A stretch of DNA of 64,000 nt from Blastocladiella emersonii ATCC 22665. Its lineage: Eukaryota > Fungi > Blastocladiomycota. Position 1 is the stretch's first letter, and the number at the start of each line of letters is the position of its first letter. The stretch covers positions 372,001 through 436,000 of the forward strand of contig JANHCV010000004.1 in the NCBI GenBank assembly GCA_025594325.1, written 5' to 3'. Of this stretch, positions 1 through 30,214 are shown in pieces. The notes under the pieces were generated by a model, which saw only the letters and a list, made by a program, of their open reading frames with translations, made no database searches and was not told the DNA's origin. Made by a program: the position numbers and the translations under genes.

Positions 1-1137
1 CAGCCGCCCGGCCCGTTCAGCGGCGGAAGGGCAAGACCTGGACGGTGGGATCTCACTCGGTGCGAGCCGACCGCCGCACCGAAGACGCGAAGCGTGAGAC
101 TCGACAAGGCGGGCCGAGTGCGGAGGCCTCGTCGGAGGTGCAGCAAGATGGCGGACTCGAAAGACCGCGCGGGCATACAGCAAGAAGGCGCCGCACCCAT
201 TCGGACGGCGGAGCTCTCTCAGAGATACATGAGCGGTTGCCGAGACGGTTGCATCAGCTTAGCATGGGTGCGTTCTGTCTCTCATGGCTCGGCGTCGTCG
301 TCGACAGAGGGAGAGGAGCGCCACCGCGGCGGCGACAGACTGACCGGCCGCCCGACCGACCTCAACCACCACCACTCACACGCCCGCTTCGACGAGAACG
401 GCCCCATCAACCTTGTAGCCCTCGGTCGTCCTTGACGAGAGTCGCCGTCGCATCACCAAGGCTGCGATTAGCTGGCGGCGGACCGGTGAACGCGACTCTG
501 CGAGGTCGACGACGACGGGCTCCTCGCCGGGTCCCTGCACGACGAGCGAGCCACCTCCAGGACGGCGCATGCAGGACGTGACGCGATTCCCAAGCGGACT
601 TGCGCGCGCGCGCGCGCGGGACGGCGGCCGCGGTGAGGGGGGGGGGGGCATCCCACGCGACCAGCCGACGCCGAGCCCCGCGAACTCGCGCGCGCACATC
701 AGTTGTTCGCCAGGGTCATGCGGACAGGTCACAGCGGTGCGAGAGCCTTCCGCTGCTTCCGTGATCGGAAAGGGAAGGTTGTTCTCGGCGGCCCCGCGGT
801 GCGTGCGCGCGCTCAGGCGACCGTCCGCGCGCACGCGAATCCGCGCGGCCCCGGAGGCCGTGACCTCTCCACATCACCTCTTCTGCTGATCCGATGGCGT
901 GCGCGTGTGGAGGACTCGGTCAGCCGGCATCCGCGCGCCTCGTCATGCGGCAGGGGTCAGCGACGGCGACGGCAGGGTCGCAAGGGATCGCGCGACTCTT
1001 TGCTCGCCGACCTCGACCTCCGACCCCTGCACGACACGGCGGAACCGATAAGTACCGGCCGGTCCCCCGCTCTCTCTCTCAAGAGTTACAGCAGCAGCAC
1101 ACGCAACCGCTAGAACGCTAAAAGTCCATCGACCAAC

Positions 1138-2340
1138 ATGCAGATCAAGGCCCTCATTGCCGCGCTCGCGCTCGTCCTCGCGACGGCGTCCTCGACCGAG
1201 GCGGCGCCCAACAACGGCGTGCGCGCGCCCGTGTCGCTCAAGGACCGCTACATTGTGACGCTCAAGGGCGACGCCGACTTCAAGACCTTCTCGCGCGCCC
1301 TCAAGGCCGAGGTGGCTGCCGAGAACGCGCGCGAGGCGTCGGGCAACGGCAGCGGCGTCGTGTCCAAGATCGACCACGAGTTCCAGATCTCGGGCGACTT
1401 CAAGGGCTACGCCGGCACCTTTGCGCCGGGGCTCATCAAGCGCCTGCAGGCCAGCGGCAAGGTCGCGGCCGTCGAGGCCGATGCGACCGTGTACGCGACG
1501 GCGACGCAGACGCCCGCGGGCTCGTGGGGCCTGACGCGCGTCGGCCAGCGCGACCTCAACCTCGCGGCGGGCTACACGTACCCGGACTCGGCCGGCGCGG
1601 GCGTGACCGCCTACGTCATCGACACGGGCGTGCTGGTGTCGCACCCGGAGCTCGAGGGCCGCGCCACGTTCGGGTTCAAGGCCGACGCGTCGTGGTCCGA
1701 CGGCGACGGCAACGGGCACGGCACGCACGTCGCGGGCACCATCGCGTCCAAGAAGTACGGCGTCGCCAAGGCCGCGTCGGTTGTGGCGGTCAAGGTCCTG
1801 GGCGATGACGGCAGCGGCACCAACTCGGGCGTGATCGCGGGCATCAACTGGGTCGCGGCGCAGGCCAAGGCCGCGGGCAAGACGGCGGTGGCCAACATGT
1901 CGCTCGGTGGCGGAAAATCGGCGGCCGTGAACGCGGCCATCAAGTCGCTCGTCAACTCGGGCGTGGTGGCCGTCGTGGCCGCGGGCAACGAGTCGCAGGA
2001 CGCGTGCAACGTGTCGCCGGCGTCCGAGCCGTCGGCCGTGACCGTGGCGTCGTCGACCAAGACGGACGCGCTGTCGTCCTTCTCCAACTACGGCAGCGGG
2101 TGCGTCGACATCATCGCGCCCGGGTCGTCCATCACGTCGACGTGGAACAACGGCGCGACCAACACCATCTCGGGCACGTCCATGGCGTCGCCGCACGTCG
2201 CCGGCGCGGCCAGCCTGATTCTCGGCGCCAACCCGTCGTTCACGGTGTCGCAGGTCGTGTCGCAGCTGCTCAGCAAGGCCACGCCCAACAAGATCACGGG
2301 CACCAAGGGCACGCCCAACAAGCTGCTTTTCGTCAACTAA
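1138..2340 (+). CDS. Secreted subtilisin-like serine protease (S8A, proteinase K type) with I9 prodomain, copy 1
   Basis: Signal peptide MQIKALIAALALVLATASS; catalytic motifs DTG, HGTHVAGT, GTSMASPHVAG; oxyanion AAGN; uninterrupted ORF. Confidence 0.96.
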   Translation: MQIKALIAALALVLATASSTEAAPNNGVRAPVSLKDRYIVTLKGDADFKTFSRALKAEVAAENAREASGNGSGVVSKIDHEFQISGDFKGYAGTFAPGLIKRLQASGKVAAVEADATVYATATQTPAGSWGLTRVGQRDLNLAAGYTYPDSAGAGVTAYVIDTGVLVSHPELEGRATFGFKADASWSDGDGNGHGTHVAGTIASKKYGVAKAASVVAVKVLGDDGSGTNSGVIAGINWVAAQAKAAGKTAVANMSLGGGKSAAVNAAIKSLVNSGVVAVVAAGNESQDACNVSPASEPSAVTVASSTKTDALSSFSNYGSGCVDIIAPGSSITSTWNNGATNTISGTSMASPHVAGAASLILGANPSFTVSQVVSQLLSKATPNKITGTKGTPNKLLFVN

Positions 2341-2602
2341 GTTTCATGGCGTTGCTGCTGCTGCTGCGTGAGTTGTTTGCGACGTGTGCGTGTACGGCTG
2401 GCCGTGCGCATGAGTCGCAGGCGCGGCTCTCCCTCCATTGTCGATTTTGTGCATATTCCATTGTGTGTCGAGAGCCCGGCTGCGCCGTGGCTTCTCGCTC
2501 CTCCTCCTCTCCCTCTCTCCCACTCGATACACTCAAGACGATCTTATTCTCCCTTTGCATTGTTCGTGTGCGCGTGTGTTGGTGTTGCGGGATGTCCGTG
2601 GC

Positions 2603-3068
2603 CCGCGGCCCGCGGGGACTTGGCCAAAGTCCGCCTACCACAGATCGAAGGGTGCTAGTGGAGCGGGATCAGGCACCGTCGAATGGATCGTACTGGTACG
2701 CCGCTGTAGGCTAAGGGCGCGTGTGAAAAGACGGGCGGCGAACTTTGGACAAAGGTTCAATCCCCGATCGAGCGCCGCCGCCAGGACGAGGGGTCGACGG
2801 GAGGGGCCGGGTTCGTAGCGAGGAAGCTAGCATCCTTTTGTTGCTGGCGCCGGTTCCGCTCCAGCCCGCTCCGCATGCTTGCGCAGGATTAAAGCGAGCA
2901 ATGTTTTGGCCATTTTTTTTAGTTTTGTGAGGGTTCGGCGTCTCGTCTCGCGCGGGCGAGCGAGCGAGCGGGCGGGAGACACTGACGCGCGGCGACGCGT
3001 CGCGATATCGCGTGACCGCTGCGAGACGCGTTTTCACTCCACCTTACCTCACGTCGCCGGCCATCGAC
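2603..3068 (+). repeat. Dispersed ~466-bp repeat R, variant 1 (structured, Pol III-like boxes)
   Basis: ccgcggcccgcgggg...ggccatcgac found five times; flanks differ between variants 1 and 2. Confidence 0.9.
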
Positions 3069-3273
3069 ACGATCAACCTTGTTCCGCTGCCCGCGATCCT
3101 GAGAAGAACGCCCGAGATATGCGGAAGCAGCAAGTATGCAAAGAAGATGCCGAAGAGAGACCGTCGGTTGAGTTGTATGTGCTATGCCAGGTCGGGTCGG
3201 GTAGGGTAGGGAGGGAGAGTACGGGCGAGCGCAGAAGGCGGGCGAGCAGGGTAGTACACGGTGGAGGAGTCAA

Positions 3274-6200
3274 TCACACAGCGGCGCGACGCCGAGGAGG
3301 GAGAAACACGGACGGCCGGCGCCGACGGCGTGAATGGTCGAGCTTCTGCTGCTGCCACTCGCGCTGCTCGCGCTGCCGCAGCTGGGCCACCTCCGCTAGG
3401 AGCGCCACGACGACCCGCGGCAGCAACGGCGGACCGGCGCACGACACCCCGTCCCCCGCGTCGACGTCCATGCCGTCGTGGTCAAAGTCGGCGAGGTCAG
3501 CGGGCTGGGCGTTGGCGGGCTTAGCATCGGCGGGCTTAGCGTCGGCGGTGGTGGTGAACAGGCCCGTGATCATCTCGGGCGCCACGGCGCACAGCTTCGC
3601 GGCCATGGTGAGCTTGGCCGCAGCGTCGCACTGGCACGCGGGTCCAGTACCCGCGGTGTTCTCGTGGTTGTGGCGCGGGTCGCGCGGGTCGCGCGGGTCG
3701 CGGCCGTAGGGATACCCGGCCACGTACCCGCGACCGCCGTTGCGCGCACGGGTCGCCGCCGCCCGGGCCACCGCCGCCGCGATCTCGGCCTGCGATGGCG
3801 GCGGGTCGAGCCGCTGCACGTCGAGAAAAAACCGGCGGATCGCGGCCTTGGCGGGGTCCGGGAGCGAGATGATGGGCTTGGGCGCGAGCGAGTCGCGGAG
3901 GATCGACAGCAGCTGCTCGAACGTGTGGCGCCACGCGGGGGTTTGCTGCAGCGGGCACGGCGGGGATCGCGGGCAGGCACCGTCGCTGCCGCCGCCGACG
4001 CCGTGGGGGAGCGGCGCGAGCGGCGAAAAGTCGACGGCGCACGACGATAGGGTCGCGGGATTGCCGCCGCCGAGCGAGGCCACGACCATGCCCGAGAGGA
4101 GGAGGTCGGCCGCACCGCTGTCGGCAATCTGGTCGAGCACCTCCTGCTGGCGCCCCGCCACGGGCGACGCCGCACCGAGGACCTTGACGGTCAGCCGCAC
4201 GACGGACGGGTCGCTCAGCGTCGCGGCGAGGTAGGCGCGGGCGCCGGCCGCGGCGGCGGTGTCGCCCGAGTTGCGGTACGTGGCGGCCCGGTTGTTGCGC
4301 TCGCCTTGGCGTCGTCGTGGTGGTCGTGGTCGCAGTGGTCGCGGTCACGGTCGGCGACGCTGATGTACAGCGCGAGCACGACGCCGAACGTGTCCGACGC
4401 CGCCGTCGCCGCCCGGCTCGGGTCAAGGGCAGCCACGAGCACTTGCACGAGCGACAGCACCTGCAGTCGTTGCTGGCGGGCCAGGAACTCGCGGACCGCG
4501 ACGCCAAACCCCTCGTAGATGTCGAGGCAGCACCGGCGCAGCACCTCGGCGAACTGGTTGTCCGCGGGCACAAACTCGCGCAGCACCCGGATCGCGGTGG
4601 GCAGGTTGCGCGGCGCATCCGGACCCAGCATGGCGCTCCGTGCGAGCACTAGATAGCGACGATGGCGATAGCGGTGGGACCGGGCGGTTAGTGCTTGCAC
4701 GCGAGGAGGAGAAGCAGGAATAGAGCGGAGTGTTCGAGCCATCAGAGTCAGCAAAAGGAGCGAGGAAACTGTTGCGTACCCTCGCCGAGCGTCGTGGTCC
4801 ACCACACGGAGCACTGCTGCTGATGCTGGTTGAGGTGTCGCCGAAGCTGCGTGAGGTTGTTCTTCTCGAGGTTCGAGTACATGACGGCGGCCCACGAGTG
4901 CGGCCCAATGCCGACGTAACCCACCACGAGCGCGTGCGAGTTGATCAGCTGCTGGACAAATTCGACGCGGGTCGACAGCGCCGCGTCAAACCGCTCGCGC
5001 TGGCCCAGTGCCCGCGGATCGGACCCGTGGTAGCTGCTGGCGCTGCCCGGGTCGCAGGTCCCGCTCCAGTCGTGCGTCGTGAGCACGTCGAGCGACTGCC
5101 CGACGGCGCGAAACAGCTCCGGCGTGTCGGCGGGAGCCACCGACGACGGCAGGGCCTTGAGGTTGGCGAGGCCCTGGGCGAAGATGGGCTCGCGGGACAG
5201 GATCTCGCTGACGAGCGTCTGCGGGTTGGCGCGGCGGCAGCGCGCGTGGCGGGCCCACTGGACGACGTCGGTCCAGCCGTCGTGCAGGAAGCCGGGCCGG
5301 GCCGGGTACGGGTTGGCGAACCGCGCGAGGGCGGGCGCGTTCCACGACAGCGCCGCCAGCGCGCCAAAGAACTGGTATCCGCGGAAGAGGGGGACGGCCG
5401 ACGTCGAGCGCTGTTGGGCCATGGCCGCCCAGAGCACGCGAGCCGCGGGGTGGTTCTTGGCGAGGCCGACGAGCTTGAGCCACGCCTCCCACGACAGCTC
5501 CAGGTCACCGAGCAGCCACGCCACCACGTCGTCCGAGACCTTGAGCAGCGCGTCGAGGAGGTGCAGGTACGGGTGCCGGTGCTGGTACAGCAGCTGCTTT
5601 TGGCGCCGCTTCGCGTCCTCGTGCGGGGCGGCGGCCACGGCCGCGGCTGCGGCGCCGGTCGCGGGTCCGCCAGTGACCGCGAGGGCCAGCAGCCGCAGGT
5701 GCGTCACCAGCGCCATGGCGACGAGCTGCTCCGACAGCTGGACGGCGTCGTTGTTGTTGGTGCCGGTGCCGGTAGCGGGAGACGCCGACGCGCAGTCGCC
5801 GCGTGCGCGTGCCACGCCGTCGGAGATGAGCTGCGCGAGTCGGCGCAGGCGGAGCTGCTGTACGTCTGCGGGCAGATCACCGAAATGGGGTCCGGCACGC
5901 CCGCCCGCGTCCACGTCCATGAGGTCGCCGTCGCTGCTCTGCTCCCACGGGTCGACGCACGCGTCGTCCTCGCTCCAGATGGGGTTGCGCTTGCGCTTGC
6001 GCTTGCGCTCGGGCTCGCGCGTGGGCTCGGGATCGGGATCGAGATCGGGTTCGACGACCTTGGCGCGACCGAGGGCAGCCGTGTCGGCGGCGTCCTCGGC
6101 CTCGGCCAGGGCCGCGAGGTCCGCGACGGCGGCAGCCGCGGACGCAGCGTCCATGCCGTTGACGACCATGCGGAAGCCGGGCGACCGCATCACCGAGTCG

Positions 6201-6921
6201 ACCCACTCGGTGAGCTGCGAGACGACGTGACGGTGCTTGAGCTGCTGCGGCACGTTGCGGGCACGACTGCCCTGGGCGCCGTCGCGCAGCAGGTCTCGAA
6301 GGTACCGCCCGACTAGCAGCTCGGCAGCGTCCATGGCGGCACGCGAGTCGGCGGCATCGGCGGAGTGCGCAGCAGGGACGGCGTGGGCAGCGGGGCCGGG
6401 TGCGGGTGCGGGTACAGGGTCAGGACCTTGCGCTGGCGCGGGCTGCGGGTCGTCGTCGCCCGCGAGGATCTCGGCCGACAGCCGGTGCAGGGAGGCGATG
6501 ACGGACGCGGGCAGGACGGCGGCGGTCGAGGTGGATGCCGTAGCGGCAACCGCCGGGGCGCGCGGGAAGGGCAGGGCGGATGGCGCAGCGGTGAGATCGA
6601 CGGCCGAGTCCATGTGCGAGGAGGGACCATGGAGTTGCGGGTGCGGGGCAGCCGCTAGTGTAGGGGCGACAGCCTTGCGCGCCTTCTCGCGCTCCCGCTT
6701 CGCGCGGTTGCGCCGTTGCGACTTGGTCACATCAGCGGGAGAGAGAGCGGGAGCGGGAGATACGGATGCGGAAGCGCCGTCGCCATCGAGCGGCGGCGAC
6801 TCGTGGCCGAGTTCAGAAGCCTACGCGCAGGGTCACGAACAAGTCAGCAACGGAGTCCTGTTCGCATGCTGCGCGCGGGCCGTCGGGAGGGCAGACGAGC
6901 AAGATAGCGCGAACGTACCAT
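3274..6921 (-). CDS. Uncharacterised ~1,100-aa, probably helical protein, copy 1 (spliced; internal frame break near 4305)
   Basis: Mirror of the 22369..26016 model; host-like GC3 bias; no family recognised. Confidence 0.7.
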
Positions 6922-8403
6922 GGCGTTTGGACGTGGTACACGAGGCGCGTGTGTTGATGATGGGCAAAGTGATTGCGACGTGCGGAGGAGAGTGGAAGGG
7001 GCGGCGGGGCGAGGCGAAGCGTGTTCCGTTGTCGCGCCGCGTCGCACGGCCCAATCGAGTGCAAGGGCGAGGAAGGTAGAGAGGGGCGAGCAGCGCCCCG
7101 AGAGAGAGAGCGAGCAATCTGCGGGGTGCTGGCGCGGCGCGAGGCAGGGGCGAGCGAGGACACGCTGACATGGCGGCGCCCCCGGACGGCGCCCGGCCTG
7201 CCCTCAGGCGTGGGAGCAATGGTGGGAGACACACCGGCTGCGCGAGGCCGAGGCGGGCGGCCGAGCGACAGGCCCAGCGACCGCGGGGCGGAGGGGGCGG
7301 GTGGCGAGAGGATCGGGCTCGCCACGGCGATGATTCATGGTGAGCGGGCTTGTGCGGTAGTGGGGCGCAAGAGAGATTGACTGCTGACCGAAGACGAGGG
7401 CGAAGGTCGGTGGCCTGGTCGCTGGCGGCGGTCGGTTGGCGGTCGGTCGGCGGCGGCGGCGAGCGCAACGTGGGAAGGCGTGGCGCCGCCACACACGTGT
7501 TTGATCGACGCGTCTCTCACCTGGTCTCTCACCCCCGCTCGGCGACCACCACCACAACACCATTTCCTTGCCAGTATAGCCTCCCATCATCCCAAATGAC
7601 TGGTGGGGCGGAGGGCCGCGGTGTATGCGGATCGGAAGACATGAATCTCGCGCTCTTCGCACGCCAAAACACTTGCATGCGAGCAACCTCGGTTCTGTGG
7701 CTTTGAAATAGACAGCAGCATGCATTCCTTGTACTGAAGCAAGGTTTATCCCAATGCCGCTTGGGGTTGATTGAGATCGAGCCCTTGACACAAGACACCG
7801 CCAAGTCGAGCCGCTCGGACATGTACTTGGACGAGACGTTAAGATCCTCGAGGGAAGCAATCAAATGTAGTAGTAAACAACCCGCGTAACCTACAGGAAA
7901 ACATGGGCTGGCGGGCGGGACTCGTGGTGCTCTTGGCGCAGCGAGTCGATCTCCGTTTTCAGGCATCACAGGCGCATCGTGCCTGTCGTGTCGCCAACAA
8001 GAGCTCGACGATGTCCTTACCGTCTGCGTTGCGCAATATACTGAAATTTGAGAGCGCAAGCGAGTGTGGTTCCATGCACGCGGGACGGGGGCACGCGGGA
8101 GTTGCGTTGCTGCTCGTCGCCCCGCAACGTTCGACATCCGTACGCTCCTCTCACAGAAACGCAACTCCCTACCCCACATTGCTGTGTATTGAGTGAATAC
8201 GGCGCCAGGCGGGGCAAGCTCGCGGTGCGGTGAAGCATTTGGAGGGTGGTTGCGCCTTCAGATCGCGACCGCTAACGCTTGAGGGAAAGCCCTCCGTCGC
8301 CGCATTTACATTGCCCATGAAACCATTTCAATCCCACTGAAAGCCGCGGGAGGGAAGGCGATGCCGGCTCAACTCGCTACAAGAGAACCACTATCACGGG
8401 ATG

Positions 8404-8869
8404 CCGCGGCCCGCGGGGACTTGGCCAAAGTCCGCCTACCACAGATCGAAGGGTGCTAGTGGAGCGGGATCAGGCACCGTCGAATGGATCGTACTGGTAC
8501 GCCGCTGTAGGCTAAGGGCGCGTGTGAAAAGACGGGCGGCGAACTTTGGACAAAGGTTCAATCCCCGATCGAGCGCCGCCGCCAGGACGAGGGGTCGACG
8601 GGAGGGGCCGGGTTCGTAGCGAGGAAGCTAGCATCCTTTTGTTGCTGGCGCCGGTTCCGCTCCAGCCCGCTCCGCATGCTTGCGCAGGATTAAAGCGAGC
8701 AATGTTTTGGCCATTTTTTTTAGTTTTGTGAGGGTTCGGCGTCTCGTCTCGCGCGGGCGAGCGAGCGAGCGGGCGGGAGACACTGACGCGCGGCGACGCG
8801 TCGCGATATCGCGTGACCGCTGCGAGACGCGTTTTCACTCCACCTTACCTCACGTCGCCGGCCATCGAC
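8404..8869 (+). repeat. Repeat R, hybrid copy at the tandem junction
   Basis: Left flank as variant 2 (cacgggatg); 3' diagnostic bases as variant 1 (aatgttttgg). Confidence 0.88.
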
Positions 8870-9074
8870 ACGATCAACCTTGTTCCGCTGCCCGCGATCC
8901 TGAGAAGAACGCCCGAGATATGCGGAAGCAGCAAGTATGCAAAGAAGATGCCGAAGAGAGACCGTCGGTTGAGTTGTATGTGCTATGCCAGGTCGGGTCG
9001 GGTAGGGTAGGGAGGGAGAGTACGGGCGAGCGCAGAAGGCGGGCGAGCAGGGTAGTACACGGTGGAGGAGTCAA

Positions 9075-12000
9075 TCACACAGCGGCGCGACGCCGAGGAG
9101 GGAGAAACACGGACGGCCGGCGCCGACGGCGTGAATGGTCGAGCTTCTGCTGCTGCCACTCGCGCTGCTCGCGCTGCCGCAGCTGGGCCACCTCCGCTAG
9201 GAGCGCCACGACGACCCGCGGCAGCAACGGCGGACCGGCGCACGACACCCCGTCCCCCGCGTCGACGTCCATGCCGTCGTGGTCAAAGTCGGCGAGGTCA
9301 GCGGGCTGGGCGTTGGCGGGCTTAGCATCGGCGGGCTTAGCGTCGGCGGTGGTGGTGAACAGGCCCGTGATCATCTCGGGCGCCACGGCGCACAGCTTCG
9401 CGGCCATGGTGAGCTTGGCCGCAGCGTCGCACTGGCACGCGGGTCCAGTACCCGCGGTGTTCTCGTGGTTGTGGCGCGGGTCGCGCGGGTCGCGCGGGTC
9501 GCGGCCGTAGGGATACCCGGCCACGTACCCGCGACCGCCGTTGCGCGCACGGGTCGCCGCCGCCCGGGCCACCGCCGCCGCGATCTCGGCCTGCGATGGC
9601 GGCGGGTCGAGCCGCTGCACGTCGAGAAAAAACCGGCGGATCGCGGCCTTGGCGGGGTCCGGGAGCGAGATGATGGGCTTGGGCGCGAGCGAGTCGCGGA
9701 GGATCGACAGCAGCTGCTCGAACGTGTGGCGCCACGCGGGGGTTTGCTGCAGCGGGCACGGCGGGGATCGCGGGCAGGCACCGTCGCTGCCGCCGCCGAC
9801 GCCGTGGGGGAGCGGCGCGAGCGGCGAAAAGTCGACGGCGCACGACGATAGGGTCGCGGGATTGCCGCCGCCGAGCGAGGCCACGACCATGCCCGAGAGG
9901 AGGAGGTCGGCCGCACCGCTGTCGGCAATCTGGTCGAGCACCTCCTGCTGGCGCCCCGCCACGGGCGACGCCGCACCGAGGACCTTGACGGTCAGCCGCA
10001 CGACGGACGGGTCGCTCAGCGTCGCGGCGAGGTAGGCGCGGGCGCCGGCCGCGGCGGCGGTGTCGCCCGAGTTGCGGTACGTGGCGGCCCGGTTGTTGCG
10101 CTCGCCTTGGCGTCGTCGTGGTGGTCGTGGTCGCAGTGGTCGCGGTCACGGTCGGCGACGCTGATGTACAGCGCGAGCACGACGCCGAACGTGTCCGACG
10201 CCGCCGTCGCCGCCCGGCTCGGGTCAAGGGCAGCCACGAGCACTTGCACGAGCGACAGCACCTGCAGTCGTTGCTGGCGGGCCAGGAACTCGCGGACCGC
10301 GACGCCAAACCCCTCGTAGATGTCGAGGCAGCACCGGCGCAGCACCTCGGCGAACTGGTTGTCCGCGGGCACAAACTCGCGCAGCACCCGGATCGCGGTG
10401 GGCAGGTTGCGCGGCGCATCCGGACCCAGCATGGCGCTCCGTGCGAGCACTAGATAGCGACGATGGCGATAGCGGTGGGACCGGGCGGTTAGTGCTTGCA
10501 CGCGAGGAGGAGAAGCAGGAATAGAGCGGAGTGTTCGAGCCATCAGAGTCAGCAAAAGGAGCGAGGAAACTGTTGCGTACCCTCGCCGAGCGTCGTGGTC
10601 CACCACACGGAGCACTGCTGCTGATGCTGGTTGAGGTGTCGCCGAAGCTGCGTGAGGTTGTTCTTCTCGAGGTTCGAGTACATGACGGCGGCCCACGAGT
10701 GCGGCCCAATGCCGACGTAACCCACCACGAGCGCGTGCGAGTTGATCAGCTGCTGGACAAATTCGACGCGGGTCGACAGCGCCGCGTCAAACCGCTCGCG
10801 CTGGCCCAGTGCCCGCGGATCGGACCCGTGGTAGCTGCTGGCGCTGCCCGGGTCGCAGGTCCCGCTCCAGTCGTGCGTCGTGAGCACGTCGAGCGACTGC
10901 CCGACGGCGCGAAACAGCTCCGGCGTGTCGGCGGGAGCCACCGACGACGGCAGGGCCTTGAGGTTGGCGAGGCCCTGGGCGAAGATGGGCTCGCGGGACA
11001 GGATCTCGCTGACGAGCGTCTGCGGGTTGGCGCGGCGGCAGCGCGCGTGGCGGGCCCACTGGACGACGTCGGTCCAGCCGTCGTGCAGGAAGCCGGGCCG
11101 GGCCGGGTACGGGTTGGCGAACCGCGCGAGGGCGGGCGCGTTCCACGACAGCGCCGCCAGCGCGCCAAAGAACTGGTATCCGCGGAAGAGGGGGACGGCC
11201 GACGTCGAGCGCTGTTGGGCCATGGCCGCCCAGAGCACGCGAGCCGCGGGGTGGTTCTTGGCGAGGCCGACGAGCTTGAGCCACGCCTCCCACGACAGCT
11301 CCAGGTCACCGAGCAGCCACGCCACCACGTCGTCCGAGACCTTGAGCAGCGCGTCGAGGAGGTGCAGGTACGGGTGCCGGTGCTGGTACAGCAGCTGCTT
11401 TTGGCGCCGCTTCGCGTCCTCGTGCGGGGCGGCGGCCACGGCCGCGGCTGCGGCGCCGGTCGCGGGTCCGCCAGTGACCGCGAGGGCCAGCAGCCGCAGG
11501 TGCGTCACCAGCGCCATGGCGACGAGCTGCTCCGACAGCTGGACGGCGTCGTTGTTGTTGGTGCCGGTGCCGGTAGCGGGAGACGCCGACGCGCAGTCGC
11601 CGCGTGCGCGTGCCACGCCGTCGGAGATGAGCTGCGCGAGTCGGCGCAGGCGGAGCTGCTGTACGTCTGCGGGCAGATCACCGAAATGGGGTCCGGCACG
11701 CCCGCCCGCGTCCACGTCCATGAGGTCGCCGTCGCTGCTCTGCTCCCACGGGTCGACGCACGCGTCGTCCTCGCTCCAGATGGGGTTGCGCTTGCGCTTG
11801 CGCTTGCGCTCGGGCTCGCGCGTGGGCTCGGGATCGGGATCGAGATCGGGTTCGACGACCTTGGCGCGACCGAGGGCAGCCGTGTCGGCGGCGTCCTCGG
11901 CCTCGGCCAGGGCCGCGAGGTCCGCGACGGCGGCAGCCGCGGACGCAGCGTCCATGCCGTTGACGACCATGCGGAAGCCGGGCGACCGCATCACCGAGTC

Positions 12001-15491: not shown

Positions 15492-15492
15492 A

Positions 15493-15515: not shown

Positions 15516-15659
15516 TCTGTCTCAGCAGTAGGCAAGTCGGCCGGCCAGTGACTGCTGAAGCCGATTCGGCCGATCGCGGACTAAGTCATGTGCTGGTATG
15601 ATGTACCAAAATTAACATGACTAAAACATCTACTACGTGGTGGTTGCTTCCGATAGCTC

Positions 15660-20886: not shown

Positions 20887-22368
20887 CATCCCGTGATAGT
20901 GGTTCTCTTGTAGCGAGTTGAGCCGGCATCGCCTTCCCTCCCGCGGCTTTCAGTGGGATTGAAATGGTTTCATGGGCAATGTAAATGCGGCGACGGAGGG
21001 CTTTCCCTCAAGCGTTAGCGGTCGCGATCTGAAGGCGCAACCACCCTCCAAATGCTTCACCGCACCGCGAGCTTGCCCCGCCTGGCGCCGTATTCACTCA
21101 ATACACAGCAATGTGGGGTAGGGAGTTGCGTTTCTGTGAGAGGAGCGTACGGATGTCGAACGTTGCGGGGCGACGAGCAGCAACGCAACTCCCGCGTGCC
21201 CCCGTCCCGCGTGCATGGAACCACACTCGCTTGCGCTCTCAAATTTCAGTATATTGCGCAACGCAGACGGTAAGGACATCGTCGAGCTCTTGTTGGCGAC
21301 ACGACAGGCACGATGCGCCTGTGATGCCTGAAAACGGAGATCGACTCGCTGCGCCAAGAGCACCACGAGTCCCGCCCGCCAGCCCATGTTTTCCTGTAGG
21401 TTACGCGGGTTGTTTACTACTACATTTGATTGCTTCCCTCGAGGATCTTAACGTCTCGTCCAAGTACATGTCCGAGCGGCTCGACTTGGCGGTGTCTTGT
21501 GTCAAGGGCTCGATCTCAATCAACCCCAAGCGGCATTGGGATAAACCTTGCTTCAGTACAAGGAATGCATGCTGCTGTCTATTTCAAAGCCACAGAACCG
21601 AGGTTGCTCGCATGCAAGTGTTTTGGCGTGCGAAGAGCGCGAGATTCATGTCTTCCGATCCGCATACACCGCGGCCCTCCGCCCCACCAGTCATTTGGGA
21701 TGATGGGAGGCTATACTGGCAAGGAAATGGTGTTGTGGTGGTGGTCGCCGAGCGGGGGTGAGAGACCAGGTGAGAGACGCGTCGATCAAACACGTGTGTG
21801 GCGGCGCCACGCCTTCCCACGTTGCGCTCGCCGCCGCCGCCGACCGACCGCCAACCGACCGCCGCCAGCGACCAGGCCACCGACCTTCGCCCTCGTCTTC
21901 GGTCAGCAGTCAATCTCTCTTGCGCCCCACTACCGCACAAGCCCGCTCACCATGAATCATCGCCGTGGCGAGCCCGATCCTCTCGCCACCCGCCCCCTCC
22001 GCCCCGCGGTCGCTGGGCCTGTCGCTCGGCCGCCCGCCTCGGCCTCGCGCAGCCGGTGTGTCTCCCACCATTGCTCCCACGCCTGAGGGCAGGCCGGGCG
22101 CCGTCCGGGGGCGCCGCCATGTCAGCGTGTCCTCGCTCGCCCCTGCCTCGCGCCGCGCCAGCACCCCGCAGATTGCTCGCTCTCTCTCTCGGGGCGCTGC
22201 TCGCCCCTCTCTACCTTCCTCGCCCTTGCACTCGATTGGGCCGTGCGACGCGGCGCGACAACGGAACACGCTTCGCCTCGCCCCGCCGCCCCTTCCACTC
22301 TCCTCCGCACGTCGCAATCACTTTGCCCATCATCAACACACGCGCCTCGTGTACCACGTCCAAACGCC

Positions 22369-25300
22369 ATGGTACGTTCGCGCTATCTTGCTCGTCTGCC
22401 CTCCCGACGGCCCGCGCGCAGCATGCGAACAGGACTCCGTTGCTGACTTGTTCGTGACCCTGCGCGTAGGCTTCTGAACTCGGCCACGAGTCGCCGCCGC
22501 TCGATGGCGACGGCGCTTCCGCATCCGTATCTCCCGCTCCCGCTCTCTCTCCCGCTGATGTGACCAAGTCGCAACGGCGCAACCGCGCGAAGCGGGAGCG
22601 CGAGAAGGCGCGCAAGGCTGTCGCCCCTACACTAGCGGCTGCCCCGCACCCGCAACTCCATGGTCCCTCCTCGCACATGGACTCGGCCGTCGATCTCACC
22701 GCTGCGCCATCCGCCCTGCCCTTCCCGCGCGCCCCGGCGGTTGCCGCTACGGCATCCACCTCGACCGCCGCCGTCCTGCCCGCGTCCGTCATCGCCTCCC
22801 TGCACCGGCTGTCGGCCGAGATCCTCGCGGGCGACGACGACCCGCAGCCCGCGCCAGCGCAAGGTCCTGACCCTGTACCCGCACCCGCACCCGGCCCCGC
22901 TGCCCACGCCGTCCCTGCTGCGCACTCCGCCGATGCCGCCGACTCGCGTGCCGCCATGGACGCTGCCGAGCTGCTAGTCGGGCGGTACCTTCGAGACCTG
23001 CTGCGCGACGGCGCCCAGGGCAGTCGTGCCCGCAACGTGCCGCAGCAGCTCAAGCACCGTCACGTCGTCTCGCAGCTCACCGAGTGGGTCGACTCGGTGA
23101 TGCGGTCGCCCGGCTTCCGCATGGTCGTCAACGGCATGGACGCTGCGTCCGCGGCTGCCGCCGTCGCGGACCTCGCGGCCCTGGCCGAGGCCGAGGACGC
23201 CGCCGACACGGCTGCCCTCGGTCGCGCCAAGGTCGTCGAACCCGATCTCGATCCCGATCCCGAGCCCACGCGCGAGCCCGAGCGCAAGCGCAAGCGCAAG
23301 CGCAACCCCATCTGGAGCGAGGACGACGCGTGCGTCGACCCGTGGGAGCAGAGCAGCGACGGCGACCTCATGGACGTGGACGCGGGCGGGCGTGCCGGAC
23401 CCCATTTCGGTGATCTGCCCGCAGACGTACAGCAGCTCCGCCTGCGCCGACTCGCGCAGCTCATCTCCGACGGCGTGGCACGCGCACGCGGCGACTGCGC
23501 GTCGGCGTCTCCCGCTACCGGCACCGGCACCAACAACAACGACGCCGTCCAGCTGTCGGAGCAGCTCGTCGCCATGGCGCTGGTGACGCACCTGCGGCTG
23601 CTGGCCCTCGCGGTCACTGGCGGACCCGCGACCGGCGCCGCAGCCGCGGCCGTGGCCGCCGCCCCGCACGAGGACGCGAAGCGGCGCCAAAAGCAGCTGC
23701 TGTACCAGCACCGGCACCCGTACCTGCACCTCCTCGACGCGCTGCTCAAGGTCTCGGACGACGTGGTGGCGTGGCTGCTCGGTGACCTGGAGCTGTCGTG
23801 GGAGGCGTGGCTCAAGCTCGTCGGCCTCGCCAAGAACCACCCCGCGGCTCGCGTGCTCTGGGCGGCCATGGCCCAACAGCGCTCGACGTCGGCCGTCCCC
23901 CTCTTCCGCGGATACCAGTTCTTTGGCGCGCTGGCGGCGCTGTCGTGGAACGCGCCCGCCCTCGCGCGGTTCGCCAACCCGTACCCGGCCCGGCCCGGCT
24001 TCCTGCACGACGGCTGGACCGACGTCGTCCAGTGGGCCCGCCACGCGCGCTGCCGCCGCGCCAACCCGCAGACGCTCGTCAGCGAGATCCTGTCCCGCGA
24101 GCCCATCTTCGCCCAGGGCCTCGCCAACCTCAAGGCCCTGCCGTCGTCGGTGGCTCCCGCCGACACGCCGGAGCTGTTTCGCGCCGTCGGGCAGTCGCTC
24201 GACGTGCTCACGACGCACGACTGGAGCGGGACCTGCGACCCGGGCAGCGCCAGCAGCTACCACGGGTCCGATCCGCGGGCACTGGGCCAGCGCGAGCGGT
24301 TTGACGCGGCGCTGTCGACCCGCGTCGAATTTGTCCAGCAGCTGATCAACTCGCACGCGCTCGTGGTGGGTTACGTCGGCATTGGGCCGCACTCGTGGGC
24401 CGCCGTCATGTACTCGAACCTCGAGAAGAACAACCTCACGCAGCTTCGGCGACACCTCAACCAGCATCAGCAGCAGTGCTCCGTGTGGTGGACCACGACG
24501 CTCGGCGAGGGTACGCAACAGTTTCCTCGCTCCTTTTGCTGACTCTGATGGCTCGAACACTCCGCTCTATTCCTGCTTCTCCTCCTCGCGTGCAAGCACT
24601 AACCGCCCGGTCCCACCGCTATCGCCATCGTCGCTATCTAGTGCTCGCACGGAGCGCCATGCTGGGTCCGGATGCGCCGCGCAACCTGCCCACCGCGATC
24701 CGGGTGCTGCGCGAGTTTGTGCCCGCGGACAACCAGTTCGCCGAGGTGCTGCGCCGGTGCTGCCTCGACATCTACGAGGGGTTTGGCGTCGCGGTCCGCG
24801 AGTTCCTGGCCCGCCAGCAACGACTGCAGGTGCTGTCGCTCGTGCAAGTGCTCGTGGCTGCCCTTGACCCGAGCCGGGCGGCGACGGCGGCGTCGGACAC
24901 GTTCGGCGTCGTGCTCGCGCTGTACATCAGCGTCGCCGACCGTGACCGCGACCACTGCGACCACGACCACCACGACGACGCCAAGGCGAGCGCAACAACC
25001 GGGCCGCCACGTACCGCAACTCGGGCGACACCGCCGCCGCGGCCGGCGCCCGCGCCTACCTCGCCGCGACGCTGAGCGACCCGTCCGTCGTGCGGCTGAC
25101 CGTCAAGGTCCTCGGTGCGGCGTCGCCCGTGGCGGGGCGCCAGCAGGAGGTGCTCGACCAGATTGCCGACAGCGGTGCGGCCGACCTCCTCCTCTCGGGC
25201 ATGGTCGTGGCCTCGCTCGGCGGCGGCAATCCCGCGACCCTATCGTCGTGCGCCGTCGACTTTTCGCCGCTCGCGCCGCTCCCCCACGGCGTCGGCGGCG

Positions 25301-26016
25301 GCAGCGACGGTGCCTGCCCGCGATCCCCGCCGTGCCCGCTGCAGCAAACCCCCGCGTGGCGCCACACGTTCGAGCAGCTGCTGTCGATCCTCCGCGACTC
25401 GCTCGCGCCCAAGCCCATCATCTCGCTCCCGGACCCCGCCAAGGCCGCGATCCGCCGGTTTTTTCTCGACGTGCAGCGGCTCGACCCGCCGCCATCGCAG
25501 GCCGAGATCGCGGCGGCGGTGGCCCGGGCGGCGGCGACCCGTGCGCGCAACGGCGGTCGCGGGTACGTGGCCGGGTATCCCTACGGCCGCGACCCGCGCG
25601 ACCCGCGCGACCCGCGCCACAACCACGAGAACACCGCGGGTACTGGACCCGCGTGCCAGTGCGACGCTGCGGCCAAGCTCACCATGGCCGCGAAGCTGTG
25701 CGCCGTGGCGCCCGAGATGATCACGGGCCTGTTCACCACCACCGCCGACGCTAAGCCCGCCGATGCTAAGCCCGCCAACGCCCAGCCCGCTGACCTCGCC
25801 GACTTTGACCACGACGGCATGGACGTCGACGCGGGGGACGGGGTGTCGTGCGCCGGTCCGCCGTTGCTGCCGCGGGTCGTCGTGGCGCTCCTAGCGGAGG
25901 TGGCCCAGCTGCGGCAGCGCGAGCAGCGCGAGTGGCAGCAGCAGAAGCTCGACCATTCACGCCGTCGGCGCCGGCCGTCCGTGTTTCTCCCTCCTCGGCG
26001 TCGCGCCGCTGTGTGA
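22369..26016 (+). CDS. Uncharacterised ~1,100-aa protein, copy 3
   Basis: ATG 22369, intron 22372-22469 (GTACGT...GCTGAC...TAG) joins in frame to the 660-aa ORF. Intron 24511-24641 (GTACGC...CTAAC...TAG) joins to the 226-aa ORF. A -1 frame break near 24985 leads into the 308-aa ORF. Confidence 0.72.
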
Positions 26017-26221
26017 TTGACTCCTCCACCGTGTACTACCCTGCTCGCCCGCCTTCTGCGCTCGCCCGTACTCTCCCTCCCTACCCTACCCGACCCGACC
26101 TGGCATAGCACATACAACTCAACCGACGGTCTCTCTTCGGCATCTTCTTTGCATACTTGCTGCTTCCGCATATCTCGGGCGTTCTTCTCAGGATCGCGGG
26201 CAGCGGAACAAGGTTGATCGT

Positions 26222-26687
26222 GTCGATGGCCGGCGACGTGAGGTAAGGTGGAGTGAAAACGCGTCTCGCAGCGGTCACGCGATATCGCGACGCGTCGCCG
26301 CGCGTCAGTGTCTCCCGCCCGCTCGCTCGCTCGCCCGCGCGAGACGAGACGCCGAACCCTCACAAAACTAAAAAAAATGGCCAAAACATTGCTCGCTTTA
26401 ATCCTGCGCAAGCATGCGGAGCGGGCTGGAGCGGAACCGGCGCCAGCAACAAAAGGATGCTAGCTTCCTCGCTACGAACCCGGCCCCTCCCGTCGACCCC
26501 TCGTCCTGGCGGCGGCGCTCGATCGGGGATTGAACCTTTGTCCAAAGTTCGCCGCCCGTCTTTTCACACGCGCCCTTAGCCTACAGCGGCGTACCAGTAC
26601 GATCCATTCGACGGTGCCTGATCCCGCTCCACTAGCACCCTTCGATCTGTGGTAGGCGGACTTTGGCCAAGTCCCCGCGGGCCGCGG
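26222..26687 (-). repeat. Repeat R, variant 1, inverted
   Basis: Reverse complement of 2603..3068. Confidence 0.9.
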
Positions 26688-26949
26688 GCCACGGACATCC
26701 CGCAACACCAACACACGCGCACACGAACAATGCAAAGGGAGAATAAGATCGTCTTGAGTGTATCGAGTGGGAGAGAGGGAGAGGAGGAGGAGCGAGAAGC
26801 CACGGCGCAGCCGGGCTCTCGACACACAATGGAATATGCACAAAATCGACAATGGAGGGAGAGCCGCGCCTGCGACTCATGCGCACGGCCAGCCGTACAC
26901 GCACACGTCGCAAACAACTCACGCAGCAGCAGCAGCAACGCCATGAAAC

Positions 26950-28152
26950 TTAGTTGACGAAAAGCAGCTTGTTGGGCGTGCCCTTGGTGCCCGTGATCTT
27001 GTTGGGCGTGGCCTTGCTGAGCAGCTGCGACACGACCTGCGACACCGTGAACGACGGGTTGGCGCCGAGAATCAGGCTGGCCGCGCCGGCGACGTGCGGC
27101 GACGCCATGGACGTGCCCGAGATGGTGTTGGTCGCGCCGTTGTTCCACGTCGACGTGATGGACGACCCGGGCGCGATGATGTCGACGCACCCGCTGCCGT
27201 AGTTGGAGAAGGACGACAGCGCGTCCGTCTTGGTCGACGACGCCACGGTCACGGCCGACGGCTCGGACGCCGGCGACACGTTGCACGCGTCCTGCGACTC
27301 GTTGCCCGCGGCCACGACGGCCACCACGCCCGAGTTGACGAGCGACTTGATGGCCGCGTTCACGGCCGCCGATTTTCCGCCACCGAGCGACATGTTGGCC
27401 ACCGCCGTCTTGCCCGCGGCCTTGGCCTGCGCCGCGACCCAGTTGATGCCCGCGATCACGCCCGAGTTGGTGCCGCTGCCGTCATCGCCCAGGACCTTGA
27501 CCGCCACAACCGACGCGGCCTTGGCGACGCCGTACTTCTTGGACGCGATGGTGCCCGCGACGTGCGTGCCGTGCCCGTTGCCGTCGCCGTCGGACCACGA
27601 CGCGTCGGCCTTGAACCCGAACGTGGCGCGGCCCTCGAGCTCCGGGTGCGACACCAGCACGCCCGTGTCGATGACGTAGGCGGTCACGCCCGCGCCGGCC
27701 GAGTCCGGGTACGTGTAGCCCGCCGCGAGGTTGAGGTCGCGCTGGCCGACGCGCGTCAGGCCCCACGAGCCCGCGGGCGTCTGCGTCGCCGTCGCGTACA
27801 CGGTCGCATCGGCCTCGACGGCCGCGACCTTGCCGCTGGCCTGCAGGCGCTTGATGAGCCCCGGCGCAAAGGTGCCGGCGTAGCCCTTGAAGTCGCCCGA
27901 GATCTGGAACTCGTGGTCGATCTTGGACACGACGCCGCTGCCGTTGCCCGACGCCTCGCGCGCGTTCTCGGCAGCCACCTCGGCCTTGAGGGCGCGCGAG
28001 AAGGTCTTGAAGTCGGCGTCGCCCTTGAGCGTCACAATGTAGCGGTCCTTGAGCGACACGGGCGCGCGCACGCCGTTGTTGGGCGCCGCCTCGGTCGAGG
28101 ACGCCGTCGCGAGGACGAGCGCGAGCGCGGCAATGAGGGCCTTGATCTGCAT
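26950..28152 (-). CDS. Secreted subtilisin-like serine protease, identical copy 2
   Basis: Same 400-aa translation as 1138..2340. Confidence 0.96.
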   Translation of the reverse strand: MQIKALIAALALVLATASSTEAAPNNGVRAPVSLKDRYIVTLKGDADFKTFSRALKAEVAAENAREASGNGSGVVSKIDHEFQISGDFKGYAGTFAPGLIKRLQASGKVAAVEADATVYATATQTPAGSWGLTRVGQRDLNLAAGYTYPDSAGAGVTAYVIDTGVLVSHPELEGRATFGFKADASWSDGDGNGHGTHVAGTIASKKYGVAKAASVVAVKVLGDDGSGTNSGVIAGINWVAAQAKAAGKTAVANMSLGGGKSAAVNAAIKSLVNSGVVAVVAAGNESQDACNVSPASEPSAVTVASSTKTDALSSFSNYGSGCVDIIAPGSSITSTWNNGATNTISGTSMASPHVAGAASLILGANPSFTVSQVVSQLLSKATPNKITGTKGTPNKLLFVN

Positions 28153-30214
28153 GTTGGTCGATGGACTTTTAGCGTTCTAGCGGTTGCGTGTGCTGCTGCT
28201 GTAACTCTTGAGAGAGAGAGCGGGGGACCGGCCGGTACTTATCGGTTCCGCCGTGTCGTGCAGGGGTCGGAGGTCGAGGTCGGCGAGCAAAGAGTCGCGC
28301 GATCCCTTGCGACCCTGCCGTCGCCGTCGCTGACCCCTGCCGCATGACGAGGCGCGCGGATGCCGGCTGACCGAGTCCTCCACACGCGCACGCCATCGGA
28401 TCAGCAGAAGAGGTGATGTGGAGAGGTCACGGCCTCCGGGGCCGCGCGGATTCGCGTGCGCGCGGACGGTCGCCTGAGCGCGCGCACGCACCGCGGGGCC
28501 GCCGAGAACAACCTTCCCTTTCCGATCACGGAAGCAGCGGAAGGCTCTCGCACCGCTGTGACCTGTCCGCATGACCCTGGCGAACAACTGATGTGCGCGC
28601 GCGAGTTCGCGGGGCTCGGCGTCGGCTGGTCGCGTGGGATGCCCCCCCCCCCCTCACCGCGGCCGCCGTCCCGCGCGCGCGCGCGCGCAAGTCCGCTTGG
28701 GAATCGCGTCACGTCCTGCATGCGCCGTCCTGGAGGTGGCTCGCTCGTCGTGCAGGGACCCGGCGAGGAGCCCGTCGTCGTCGACCTCGCAGAGTCGCGT
28801 TCACCGGTCCGCCGCCAGCTAATCGCAGCCTTGGTGATGCGACGGCGACTCTCGTCAAGGACGACCGAGGGCTACAAGGTTGATGGGGCCGTTCTCGTCG
28901 AAGCGGGCGTGTGAGTGGTGGTGGTTGAGGTCGGTCGGGCGGCCGGTCAGTCTGTCGCCGCCGCGGTGGCGCTCCTCTCCCTCTGTCGACGACGACGCCG
29001 AGCCATGAGAGACAGAACGCACCCATGCTAAGCTGATGCAACCGTCTCGGCAACCGCTCATGTATCTCTGAGAGAGCTCCGCCGTCCGAATGGGTGCGGC
29101 GCCTTCTTGCTGTATGCCCGCGCGGTCTTTCGAGTCCGCCATCTTGCTGCACCTCCGACGAGGCCTCCGCACTCGGCCCGCCTTGTCGAGTCTCACGCTT
29201 CGCGTCTTCGGTGCGGCGGTCGGCTCGCACCGAGTGAGATCCCACCGTCCAGGTCTTGCCCTTCCGCCGCTGAACGGGCCGGGCGGCTGCGGTCACGCCT
29301 TGATCTTCGGTCACGGCAACGTTTGCGGGCTCGCAGGCGATATCGAACCCGTCGCTCGGCAAGTCTGTCGTGATTGCACGCCGTACACGGTGCGCGTGGC
29401 CTCGGGCCGCTTTTAGCGCCATGTCCGTCCATCGACAGGTGCATTAAGCGCGTCGAGAAGCTCTCGCCTGCCCGCCCTTGACGTCCTTGTTGAGCGGCTC
29501 GAACGCTCCAGCAACTCCTTGAAGCGCGGATCAGGTTCTCAGTCGTTCTCGGTCGCCTCGGCCGAGTTCCACGTCGACTTCGCGATCGCGCCCGAGTTGC
29601 TCTTGATCCTCAACTTGTTGTGCCGGACACTTGTGCTTCTCGCGGCGACGCGCGTGCTGTTCTACGAGCTCTGCGACCTGATTTTCGCCTTTGGTGTTTA
29701 CAAGGCCGTGCTTAACGTCCAGGGCGCCATGCCCTTTCCGCCATGATCCTTCACGCGCCGCGTTGCGTATGACGATACCGATCGAGGGCTTCGTCATGCT
29801 GCGGTCCCGACGTCTTAACAAGGATATTTTGGAGCAAGGCTCTATCATAGCGATGTCTGATCCCGAGACGGGCAAGATTGCTGCCGCGATCAACGGTAAG
29901 CCGATCTGGTCCTGTTCCGCGGGCTCGCTACGGTTAGAACGCTCGTCATCCAGCCACTCAGCTTGTAGTCGGTCACACGCTTTGACCGCATCGCGGGTAT
30001 GGCGCCCATCAAGGACGTGACGGCGCTCGGCAACGCGGTGCCGATTCGCGCGTTGACTGACGGGGCATCTCGCGTCGTAACCCGTATCGCTGCCACGGTC
30101 CAAGTCGCTCATGGCGCGCCAAGGACGAGTACGATAGCAACGCATTCATGATCTGCAAATGAACTTGCATTTGAACGAACGTCTAACAAAACCTGCTGCA
30201 GCGCGTGCCGCCGT

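Follow-up and report, generated by a model that had tools for sequence, protein, structure and literature searches.

Blastocladiella emersonii ATCC 22665 very probably carries, at the start of the 64,000-nucleotide stretch analyzed here (the window, C16:372001-436000 of a PacBio HiFi assembly), a large inverted duplication of host genes. The locus raises the question of whether two mirror-image gene copies really exist in the chromosome and, if so, which event created them.

Geometry and cargo of the duplication

An inverted-repeat search of the window returned two pairs of segments, 1-8726 with 20564-29289 and 8404-15491 with 19600-26687, both 100% complementary, and the same search found 5801-base direct repeats. 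In a self-BLAST comparison to which 30 kb of upstream sequence had been added, as a preliminary description of this DNA had asked, the left arm extended only 342 bases past the window start and paired with position 29643, which located its outer end at C16:371659. The preliminary description had reported a near-perfect inverted duplication of at least 9.7 kb with identical arms, a left arm running beyond the window and a 4108-bp spacer. Each point was borne out, with a right arm of 10,044 bases, a short left extension, the spacer at the expected length and, by direct count, 0 mismatches in 8,659 + 1,287 = 9,946 paired bases (Table 1). The locus is therefore a palindrome, with inverted arms of several kilobases that exceed 99.9% identity and flank a unique spacer. 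A few true differences between the arms could have been lost through read correction and Pilon polishing.

Table 1. Features of the palindrome and related loci. Coordinates are window positions, negative numbers being bases upstream of the window start, except where a contig is named.
Feature	Coordinates	Strand	Remarks
Left arm	-342 (C16:371659) to 15491		15,834 bases; includes one extra 5801-base tandem unit
Right arm	19600-29643		10,044 bases; 19600-29545 letter-identical to left arm; 29546-29643, 84% fringe
Spacer	15492-19599		4108 bases, unique; transposon relics
Subtilase gene, left copy	1138-2340	+	400 aa; signal peptide, I9 propeptide, S8 domain with D/H/S motifs
Subtilase gene, right copy	26950-28152	-	Identical to left copy
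Tandem unit 1	2603-8403		R repeat and orphan gene
Tandem unit 2	8404-14204		Identical to unit 1; left arm only
Third R copy, left arm	14205-14678		Distal 163 bases are a 94% variant
R copies, right arm	20413-20886 and 26213-26687
Orphan gene, left copies	3274-6730 and 9075-12531	-
Orphan gene, right copy	22560-26016	+	660-aa ORF and two frames downstream
Helitron-like element	15493-17292	-	1.8 kb; complete, non-autonomous
Helitron Rep domain relic	18868-19419	+	Different, oppositely oriented element; Pfam Helitron_like_N, E=5.7e-12
SPRY-family gene relic	29549-30143	+	Crosses outer edge of right arm
SPRY relic, inverted counterpart	-597 to -216		Upstream of window
Second palindrome	C1:328405-346703 / 363790-382085		18.3-kb arms; subtilase paralog as cargo
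Third palindrome	C16: up to 302401 / 309813-316225

The two tandem 5801-base units of the left arm showed 0 mismatches by direct count, and the 5.8-kb unit is identical in each of its three copies, the one in the right arm included. The extra unit is flanked by R repeats, and the middle R has the composition expected from an exchange between R copies, in keeping with the R-bounded tandem copy described earlier. With no Rfam family or tRNA matched in positions 1-31000, we rejected R as a Pol III or SINE-type RNA element. A genome search for other arm-like sequence returned subtilase paralogs (70 to 93% identity), one R-like repeat (C16:273182-273620, 87% identical, the one other copy of R seen) and short weak matches; apart from these, it found no further copy of the arm. 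A sensitive self-comparison of the spacer detected no internal inverted repeat, ruling out an older palindrome concealed there.

Judged by its sequence, the cargo subtilase is an intact proteinase-K-type enzyme (peptidase S8A). The predicted protein matches the Pfam families S8 (E=3.4e-41) and I9 (E=3.8e-06), carries the motifs DTG, HGTH, and GTSMASPH behind a hydrophobic N-terminal signal, and has proteinase K 2b6n as its best solved relative (E=1e-80). The orphan gene, present in three copies to the two of the subtilase, has no relative in Pfam or the protein atlas. Dosage selection on the protease is possible.

Inner and outer junctions

The inner edge of the left arm coincides with the exact 3′ end of a Helitron-like element (CTAG and the host T), so that the transposon-defined breakpoint noted in the preliminary description holds. 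The 3′ terminus, ...GTGTGC-AAA-GCACAC-ACCG-CTAG, lies at 15493, exactly at the 15492/15493 boundary and next to a host T at 15492, while the 5′ end lies at 17292 (TCTCAGCAGTA...). Both ends have the terminal structure of Helitron-like elements (PMC5148889), namely, a 5′ TCTCAGCAG... and the 3′ hairpin and CTAG given above; they are conserved in 8 copies, and the flanks are unrelated in the 7 other copies. The first 14 bases of the 5′ end recur inverted at 15520-15533, 27 bases before the 3′ end, and a T stands beside both element ends in all copies read, with no target duplication. The element thus has the asymmetric terminal inverted repeat and the insertion between T and T without target duplication that are traits of Helitron2/Helentron elements. 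Its three longest open reading frames contain no Pfam domain and thus no RepHel transposase, and the family includes short-form members of about 2.0 kb; the element is therefore non-autonomous. Family copies are 96 to 98% alike, from which we conclude that the family has been recently active; the junction copy is about 80% identical to the family.

The Rep relic at the other end of the spacer shares 36 to 52% identity with other Rep frames in the genome. We rejected a split Helitron with helicase and Rep portions arranged head to head, since the left piece is complete, with both termini and no helicase domain, and the Rep relic is part of a different element in the opposite orientation; a tblastx comparison of the spacer with the family copies gave composition noise only. 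The right inner junction is blunt and lacks a transposon end, and neither inner junction shows microhomology. Open reading frames that span the junctions had no exact match in the sequence collection searched, a negative that is uninformative for a eukaryote. The right junction does not match in sequence an empty site of the Helitron-like insertion and was rejected as one. The host T at 15492 lies outside the duplicated sequence, leaving a one-base offset in the fit between arm and element.

At the outer edge, identity between the arms is graded, falling from 100% to 84% over about 90 bases and then to the level of paralogs. The outermost parts of the arms, -342 to -256 (87 bases) and 29546-29643 (98 bases), are 84% alike with a 10-base indel, and within this fringe the left and right sequences are each other's closest relatives. 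Beyond it lie, on either side, diverged relics of a single SPRY gene family in opposite orientations, which can no longer be aligned with each other. Here each flank is nearer to a SPRY-gene paralog about 100 kb away (C16:270250-273018, 68 to 72%) than to the opposite flank (58%), indicating that this outermost zone is not a relic of the left-right duplication. The fringe itself is compatible both with an older exchange and with a heteroduplex junction.

Origin of the palindrome

Two mirror-image, letter-identical 10-kb copies with a secreted protease gene very probably do exist in B. emersonii. Were the structure an assembly artefact, a fold-back chimera or a wrong path through repeats would have been written into the contig where no inverted pair exists. 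Perfectly identical arms whose length is close to the 10.5-kb average of the HiFi reads (mean coverage reported as approximately 190x) might invite such an error, and the main text of the published genome paper mentions neither palindromes nor inverted repeats (PMC9730499). The left arm, at 15.8 kb, is moreover longer than most reads, so that reads may well not have fixed on which side the extra unit lies and which way the spacer points. A fold-back caused by a missing adapter, however, would leave nothing between the arms, and at this locus they are separated by 4.1 kb of unique transposon relics; one arm also has a 5.8-kb unit more than the other. The outer edge shows a gradient, not a sharp boundary, and the palindrome sits 370 kb within a 2.5-Mb contig in which both outer flanks continue, the left one being unique in a genome search made for that flank. 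In addition, de Bruijn assembler output requires that both distinct spacer-arm junction sequences occur in the reads, and other palindromes of this genome retain 2 to 4 mismatches. An artefact is therefore quite unlikely, and the earlier leaning toward a real event is strengthened.

On balance, we favor a real inverted segmental duplication within the chromosome that a single recent round of recombination-dependent copying produced or most recently overwrote. A double-strand break at or near the 3′ end of the Helitron-like element would have allowed one broken end to pair with the inverted SPRY relic, despite their imperfect match, and about 10 kb of the opposite arm would then have been copied by repair synthesis. 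If the left arm is the new one, the copy would have been sealed by end-joining at the element terminus; if instead the right arm is new, synthesis would have run off a nicked template at the element end, and the product would have been joined at 19599. The direction cannot be told from the sequence. Slippage between R repeats, or an unequal exchange involving them, could have added the extra 5.8-kb unit while the error-prone synthesis was under way or shortly afterwards, and the outcome would be two secreted subtilase copies and three orphan gene copies.

What broke the chromosome can be addressed more tentatively. Helraiser, the sole Helitron transposase tested, cuts both strands precisely at the 3′ end (PMC4778049). 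A RepHel protein acting in trans, for which the family offers a candidate in a 1481-aa open frame near C2:728.8-729.9 kb, might similarly have cut the 3′ terminus of the element, so that a site-specific break seeded the 10-kb inverted duplication of host genes, an idea that we regard as doubtful. The link between break and Helitron rests on one exact coincidence. If true, the ends of rolling-circle transposons could serve as programmed fragile sites from which gene-bearing palindromes are built, and RepHel-cut ends might help explain the palindromes of B. emersonii, for which we know of no described sexual cycle.

The chief competitor to a single recent copying event is an old palindrome kept identical by repeated arm-to-arm gene conversion, in which case the junctions would be old and only the identity recent. 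The graded outer edge would suit this history, with left and right mutually closest in the 84% fringe before identity drops to the paralog level, and so would the age of the spacer relics, given the divergence of the Helitron-like copy and of the Rep relic from their relatives. The fringe may represent a conversion tract of earlier date, in which case the palindrome would be older as well. Yet arm-to-arm conversion alone leaves unexplained three identical 5.8-kb units that include a tandem pair. Each outermost flank, too, resembles a paralog at a distance of 100 kb more closely than it does the opposite flank, and the self-comparison of the spacer revealed no diverged arm homology inward of the Helitron-like element. 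We consider long-term conversion possible, although clearly less probable than one recent event.

Classical fold-back priming would dispense with the transposon. A break to the right of the spacer would have freed a 3′ end that annealed to a short inverted repeat beside the Helitron-like element and primed its own synthesis along the left arm, until the second end captured the new strand in the SPRY relic; adjacency to the Helitron would be coincidental. The arms would by now conceal any short repeat that served as primer, and the homeologous outer junction is consistent with capture of a new strand. The loop, however, looks large, as fold-back priming usually involves loops smaller than 4.1 kb. 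A short loop bounded by a short inverted repeat is not what we observed, the spacer being 4108 bases long and a copied repeat being invisible, and the distal chromosome was neither lost nor replaced, since both flanks continue in the 2.5-Mb contig. The exact match to the element terminus would also go unexplained, with a chance of about 1 in 10,000 that a random position falls within one base of it. Fold-back inverted duplication induced by double-strand breaks is established in yeast (PMC10622511), but Mre11 and a Sae2/CtIP domain, suppressors of this route in yeast, are both present in the genome. We therefore think this route unlikely here. The presence of both genes also led us to reject loss of hairpin-processing genes as a cause of the palindromes.

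Finally, the right arm could be host DNA mobilized by the Helitron machinery, through 3′ read-through transduction or as a composite element inserted twice. Bypass of the terminator hairpin lets Helitrons carry along DNA from beyond their 3′ end (PMC4778049), and the DNA directly 3′ of the element is precisely the left arm. When the defining layout of a read-through transduction was tested, it was absent, for the sequence before the right arm is unrelated and is not an element 3′ end. In addition, the arm ends on its far side in a graded homeologous junction with no new terminus, the host T was not carried along, and no arm copy beyond the partial matches listed above exists in the genome. Mobilization thus appears highly improbable.

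Comparison with other palindromes and known systems

The palindrome on C1 and the one lying upstream on C16 have retained 2 to 4 mismatches, unlike the window palindrome with 0. The C1 subtilase copies point away from the center, whereas those of the window point toward it, and this opposite orientation indicates that the duplication events were independent. A search of both spacer edges of the upstream C16 palindrome found unique DNA, and transposon ends were accordingly rejected as a general rule for palindrome edges. Users of the B. emersonii assembly who derive gene counts, copy number or synteny from it should know that such palindromes exist. The window palindrome is a familiar kind of structure that changes no concept, and only the detail of its junctions is unusual. 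Those junctions are unusually readable, one being blunt and placed at a transposon cutting site, the other graded and placed in diverged inverted paralogs, making the locus a good natural example for the origin of inverted gene duplications outside animals and yeast.

Human DUP-TRP/INV-DUP rearrangements arise by template switching between inverted low-copy repeats. As in these rearrangements, one junction of the B. emersonii palindrome lies in a pre-existing inverted homologous pair and the other is non-homologous, but the homologous pair is short and strongly diverged, and we saw no triplicated segment. With the inverted duplications that follow double-strand breaks in yeast and cancer, the locus would share break-initiated, polymerase-dependent inverted copying of adjacent DNA (PMC10622511). 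Those fold-backs have short loops and short inverted repeats, and the distal chromosome is usually lost, whereas in B. emersonii the spacer measures 4.1 kb, both flanks are kept, and the junctions are a blunt one at a transposon terminus and one in diverged paralogs.

Mammalian sex-chromosome palindromes undergo arm-to-arm gene conversion and vary structurally through ectopic exchange. The B. emersonii palindrome resembles them in its near-identical inverted arms of many kilobases, its unique spacer, its two-copy gene cargo and its ectopic-exchange variation. It differs in that its arms are only 10 kb long, show no evidence of long-term persistence and belong to a zoosporic fungus. It differs also in holding, inside one arm, an equally identical tandem unit, which points to youth rather than to maintenance.

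Arm extent and outer junctions

The preliminary description had reported a near-perfect palindrome of at least 9.7 kb with a 4108-bp spacer and a left arm continuing past the window edge. A repeat search of the window recovered two perfectly complementary arm pairs (1-8726 with 20564-29289 and 8404-15491 with 19600-26687) together with direct repeats at a spacing of 5801 bases. When 30 kb of upstream sequence was added, self-BLAST placed the end of the left arm only 342 bases beyond the window start, so that the arm does overrun the edge; it is the longer arm because it holds one extra 5801-base unit (see table). The description of the arms as near-perfect copies was also correct: by direct count we found no mismatches in 9,946 paired bases (8,659 + 1,287) and none between the tandem 5801-base units, although these counts refer to a polished assembly, from which a handful of true arm differences may have been polished away.

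From the outside inwards, the arms carry the 5' part of a SPRY-family relic, a subtilase gene and a repeat of ~470 bases (R). Next come 5.3 kb that contain an orphan gene, represented by a 660-aa ORF and two further frames, then another R that is a 94% variant over its distal 163 bases, and finally 0.8 kb of unique DNA. The subtilase comprises a signal peptide, an I9 propeptide and an S8 domain with DTG, HGTH and GTSMASPH motifs. The left arm is laid out as R-unit-R-unit-R, and the middle R has the variant that would result if exchange had taken place inside the 323 bases that the R copies share. No Rfam families or tRNAs were found in 1-31000.

The arms are 100% identical outward to about -255 and 29545. 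The next 87 and 98 bases share 84% identity, the right copy having a tandem indel of 10 bases, and further out the left and right flanks are at background (58%) with no mutual alignment. These outermost flanks still match a gene elsewhere on the contig, a 922-aa frame with a SPRY domain, at 72% and 68%, respectively. At the protein level, the left relic extends to -597 and the right relic runs on into the SPRY domain at 29808-30070. As judged from these alignments, the arm ends fall inside two old, oppositely oriented members of one gene family; the left and right copies are mutual closest relatives in the 84% zone and not in the outermost zone. The only other R-like copy seen (87%) lies 160 bases after the 922-aa frame and is followed by a frame of 404 aa that has no match in Pfam (neighborhood C16:270250-274998), which hints at an older shared neighborhood. 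Just outside the palindrome is a 198-base inverted pair, 96% complementary and 24.8 kb apart; because 30204-30600 also matches two places on contig C19 at 83-84%, the pair probably represents transposon ends.

Features of the palindrome and related loci (coordinates without a contig prefix refer to the window, C16:372001-436000; negative values lie upstream of its start)
Feature	Position	Strand	Remarks
Left arm	-342 to 15491		15,834 bases
Right arm	19600-29643		10,044 bases
Subtilase, left copy	1138-2340	+	Intact, intronless, proteinase-K-type
Subtilase, right copy	26950-28152	-	Intact, intronless, proteinase-K-type
10-base tandem duplication	29558-29577		CGACCGAGAA CGACTGAGAA; right copy of 84% fringe only
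Helitron-like element	15493-17292		
Rep relic	18868-19419	+	Strand opposite to Helitron-like element
198-base inverted pair	30552-30749 / 55563-55760		
SPRY gene	C16:270250-273018		
R-like copy	C16:273182-273620		
C1 palindrome	C1:328405-346703 / 363790-382085		18.3-kb arms, 99.96% (4 mismatches, 1 gap); 17.1-kb spacer
C16 upstream palindrome	C16: arm up to 302401 / 309813-316225		Arms at least 6.4 kb, 2 mismatches, 1 gap; 7.4-kb spacer
Candidate palindromes (inverted equal-score pairs)	C2:634-639 kb; C3:481-491, 636-688, 850-855, 978-1005 kb; C6:765-902 kb; C7:43-50 kb; C12:6-52 kb; C18:57-86 kb; C19:799-840 kb; C20:1531-1606 kb		

Inner junctions and spacer

Over its first 1.8 kb the spacer is repetitive: this segment matches at least 40 places in the genome at ~80% identity, and many of the matches begin at spacer base 1. 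Eight copies that we compared share the terminus A-CTAG-(C/G)GG-GTGTGC-TTT-GCACAC..., to the left of which the DNA is unrelated. Read on the element strand, the order is hairpin, CTAG and then a host T, which is the form of a classical Helitron 3' end. The opposite terminus is at 17292, where the element strand reads TCTCAGCAGTA... and the flanks are again unrelated. The first 14 bases of this 5' end recur in inverse orientation 27 bases before the 3' end, matching the asymmetric terminal inverted repeat that is a trait of Helitron2/Helentron elements (PMC5148889). Since both termini were found, the three longest ORFs of the window element contained no Pfam domains and the family has short members (~2.03 kb, some 96-98% alike), the element is complete and non-autonomous. 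One subgroup of the family bears a 1.27-kb insert. A single base, the host T, separates the left arm edge from the 3' terminus of the element.

At the right junction (…CCAGAAAA|CGACGATG…) no transposon end was found, and neither inner junction showed microhomology with the continuation of the other arm. The spacer contained no inverted repeat, indicating that the arms never reached further inward in any still visible form. The Rep relic near its right end shares only 36-52% identity with other Rep frames and belongs to a different, older element than the Helitron-like one. A 1481-aa stop-free frame resembling this relic (C2:728791-729867) is a candidate for the RepHel transposase, still intact, of an autonomous Helitron.

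Palindromes elsewhere in the genome

The window palindrome appears to be one of many in B. emersonii. The C1 palindrome carries a subtilase pair (annotated H9P43_000150 and 000155) that is 92% identical to the window copies, and a 378-base direct repeat (356071-356448 = 363413-363790) adjoins the inner edge of its right arm. Its subtilase genes are directed away from the center, whereas those of the window are directed towards it, so the two events were independent. Another palindrome, ~70 kb upstream on C16, has unique DNA at both spacer edges and a left arm that continues past the sequence examined (C16:296001-316225). Four genome searches yielded further candidates on eight contigs. Five subtilase paralog pairs matched by DNA (window, C1, C3, C7 and C19) are inverted with equal scores, those of the window and C1 being the confirmed palindromes; the C3 pair is that at 850-855 kb, and the C7 and C19 candidates are likewise subtilase pairs. 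Loss of the hairpin-opening nuclease does not explain this abundance, because an Mre11 DNA-binding domain (C16:1294389-1295006, 150 bits) and a Sae2/CtIP C-terminal domain (C2:977387-977632, 42 bits summed, within a 1113-aa frame) are present.

Authenticity and proposed origin

The assembly of B. emersonii ATCC 22665 (32.65 Mb, 21 contigs; C16, 2,513,224 bases) was built from PacBio HiFi reads averaging 10.5 kb using the La Jolla Assembler, purge_dups and Pilon polishing, at a mean coverage of ~190x, as derived from the mitochondrial contig (8,400x, 44 times the mean); the main text of the genome paper does not contain the words "palindrome" or "inverted" (PMC9730499). With arms as long as typical reads, the spacer orientation and the arm holding the extra unit are given as assembled. 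Several features nevertheless argue for a real structure rather than an artefact. The 4.1-kb spacer is unique, whereas fold-back reads arising from a missing adapter have no spacer, and the two distinct spacer-arm junctions must both have been present in reads. The palindrome is embedded in a 2.5-Mb contig, 370 kb from its start, and has unique DNA on its left; its outer edge is graded, its arms differ structurally by a 5.8-kb unit, and other palindromes of the same assembly retain a few differences.

For a Helitron-like element to have inserted by chance to within one base of an existing arm edge, the odds would be ~1 in 10,000, and thus the breakpoint was most likely set by the terminus. The transposon 3' end is where Helraiser, the sole Helitron transposase examined in vitro, makes precise cuts on both strands (PMC4778049), and a transposase acting in trans at this end is plausible because the family has young copies. 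In the best reading, whose steps we infer, the DNA would have broken at the 3' terminus or beside it, and one of the broken ends would have paired with the inverted SPRY relic despite the imperfect match; ~10 kb of repair synthesis would have followed before blunt end-joining closed the copy. Either arm may be the new one: a new left arm would have been joined, once finished, to the break end at the element, while a new right arm would reflect synthesis on the left arm running off the nicked terminus. A transposase still on the 5' T would account for the T left uncopied. The extra unit may stem from template slippage between R repeats during synthesis or from later unequal exchange.

The main rival to such a recent break-and-copy event is an older palindrome held identical by conversion. 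The 84% fringe speaks for this reading, as does the age of the relics in the spacer; the tandem unit, which is just as perfect, counts against it. The layout rules out both read-through transduction and a composite mobile element. Taken together, the sequence argues for a real, young, gene-bearing inverted duplication, which is an already known kind of structure. The locus stands out for its two readable junctions, chiefly for the inner one that coincides exactly with the 3' terminus of a Helitron-like element. The family of this element shares its CTAG end and 3' hairpin with classical Helitrons, and has the asymmetric inverted repeat of Helitron2/Helentron elements together with their insertion site, T|T.
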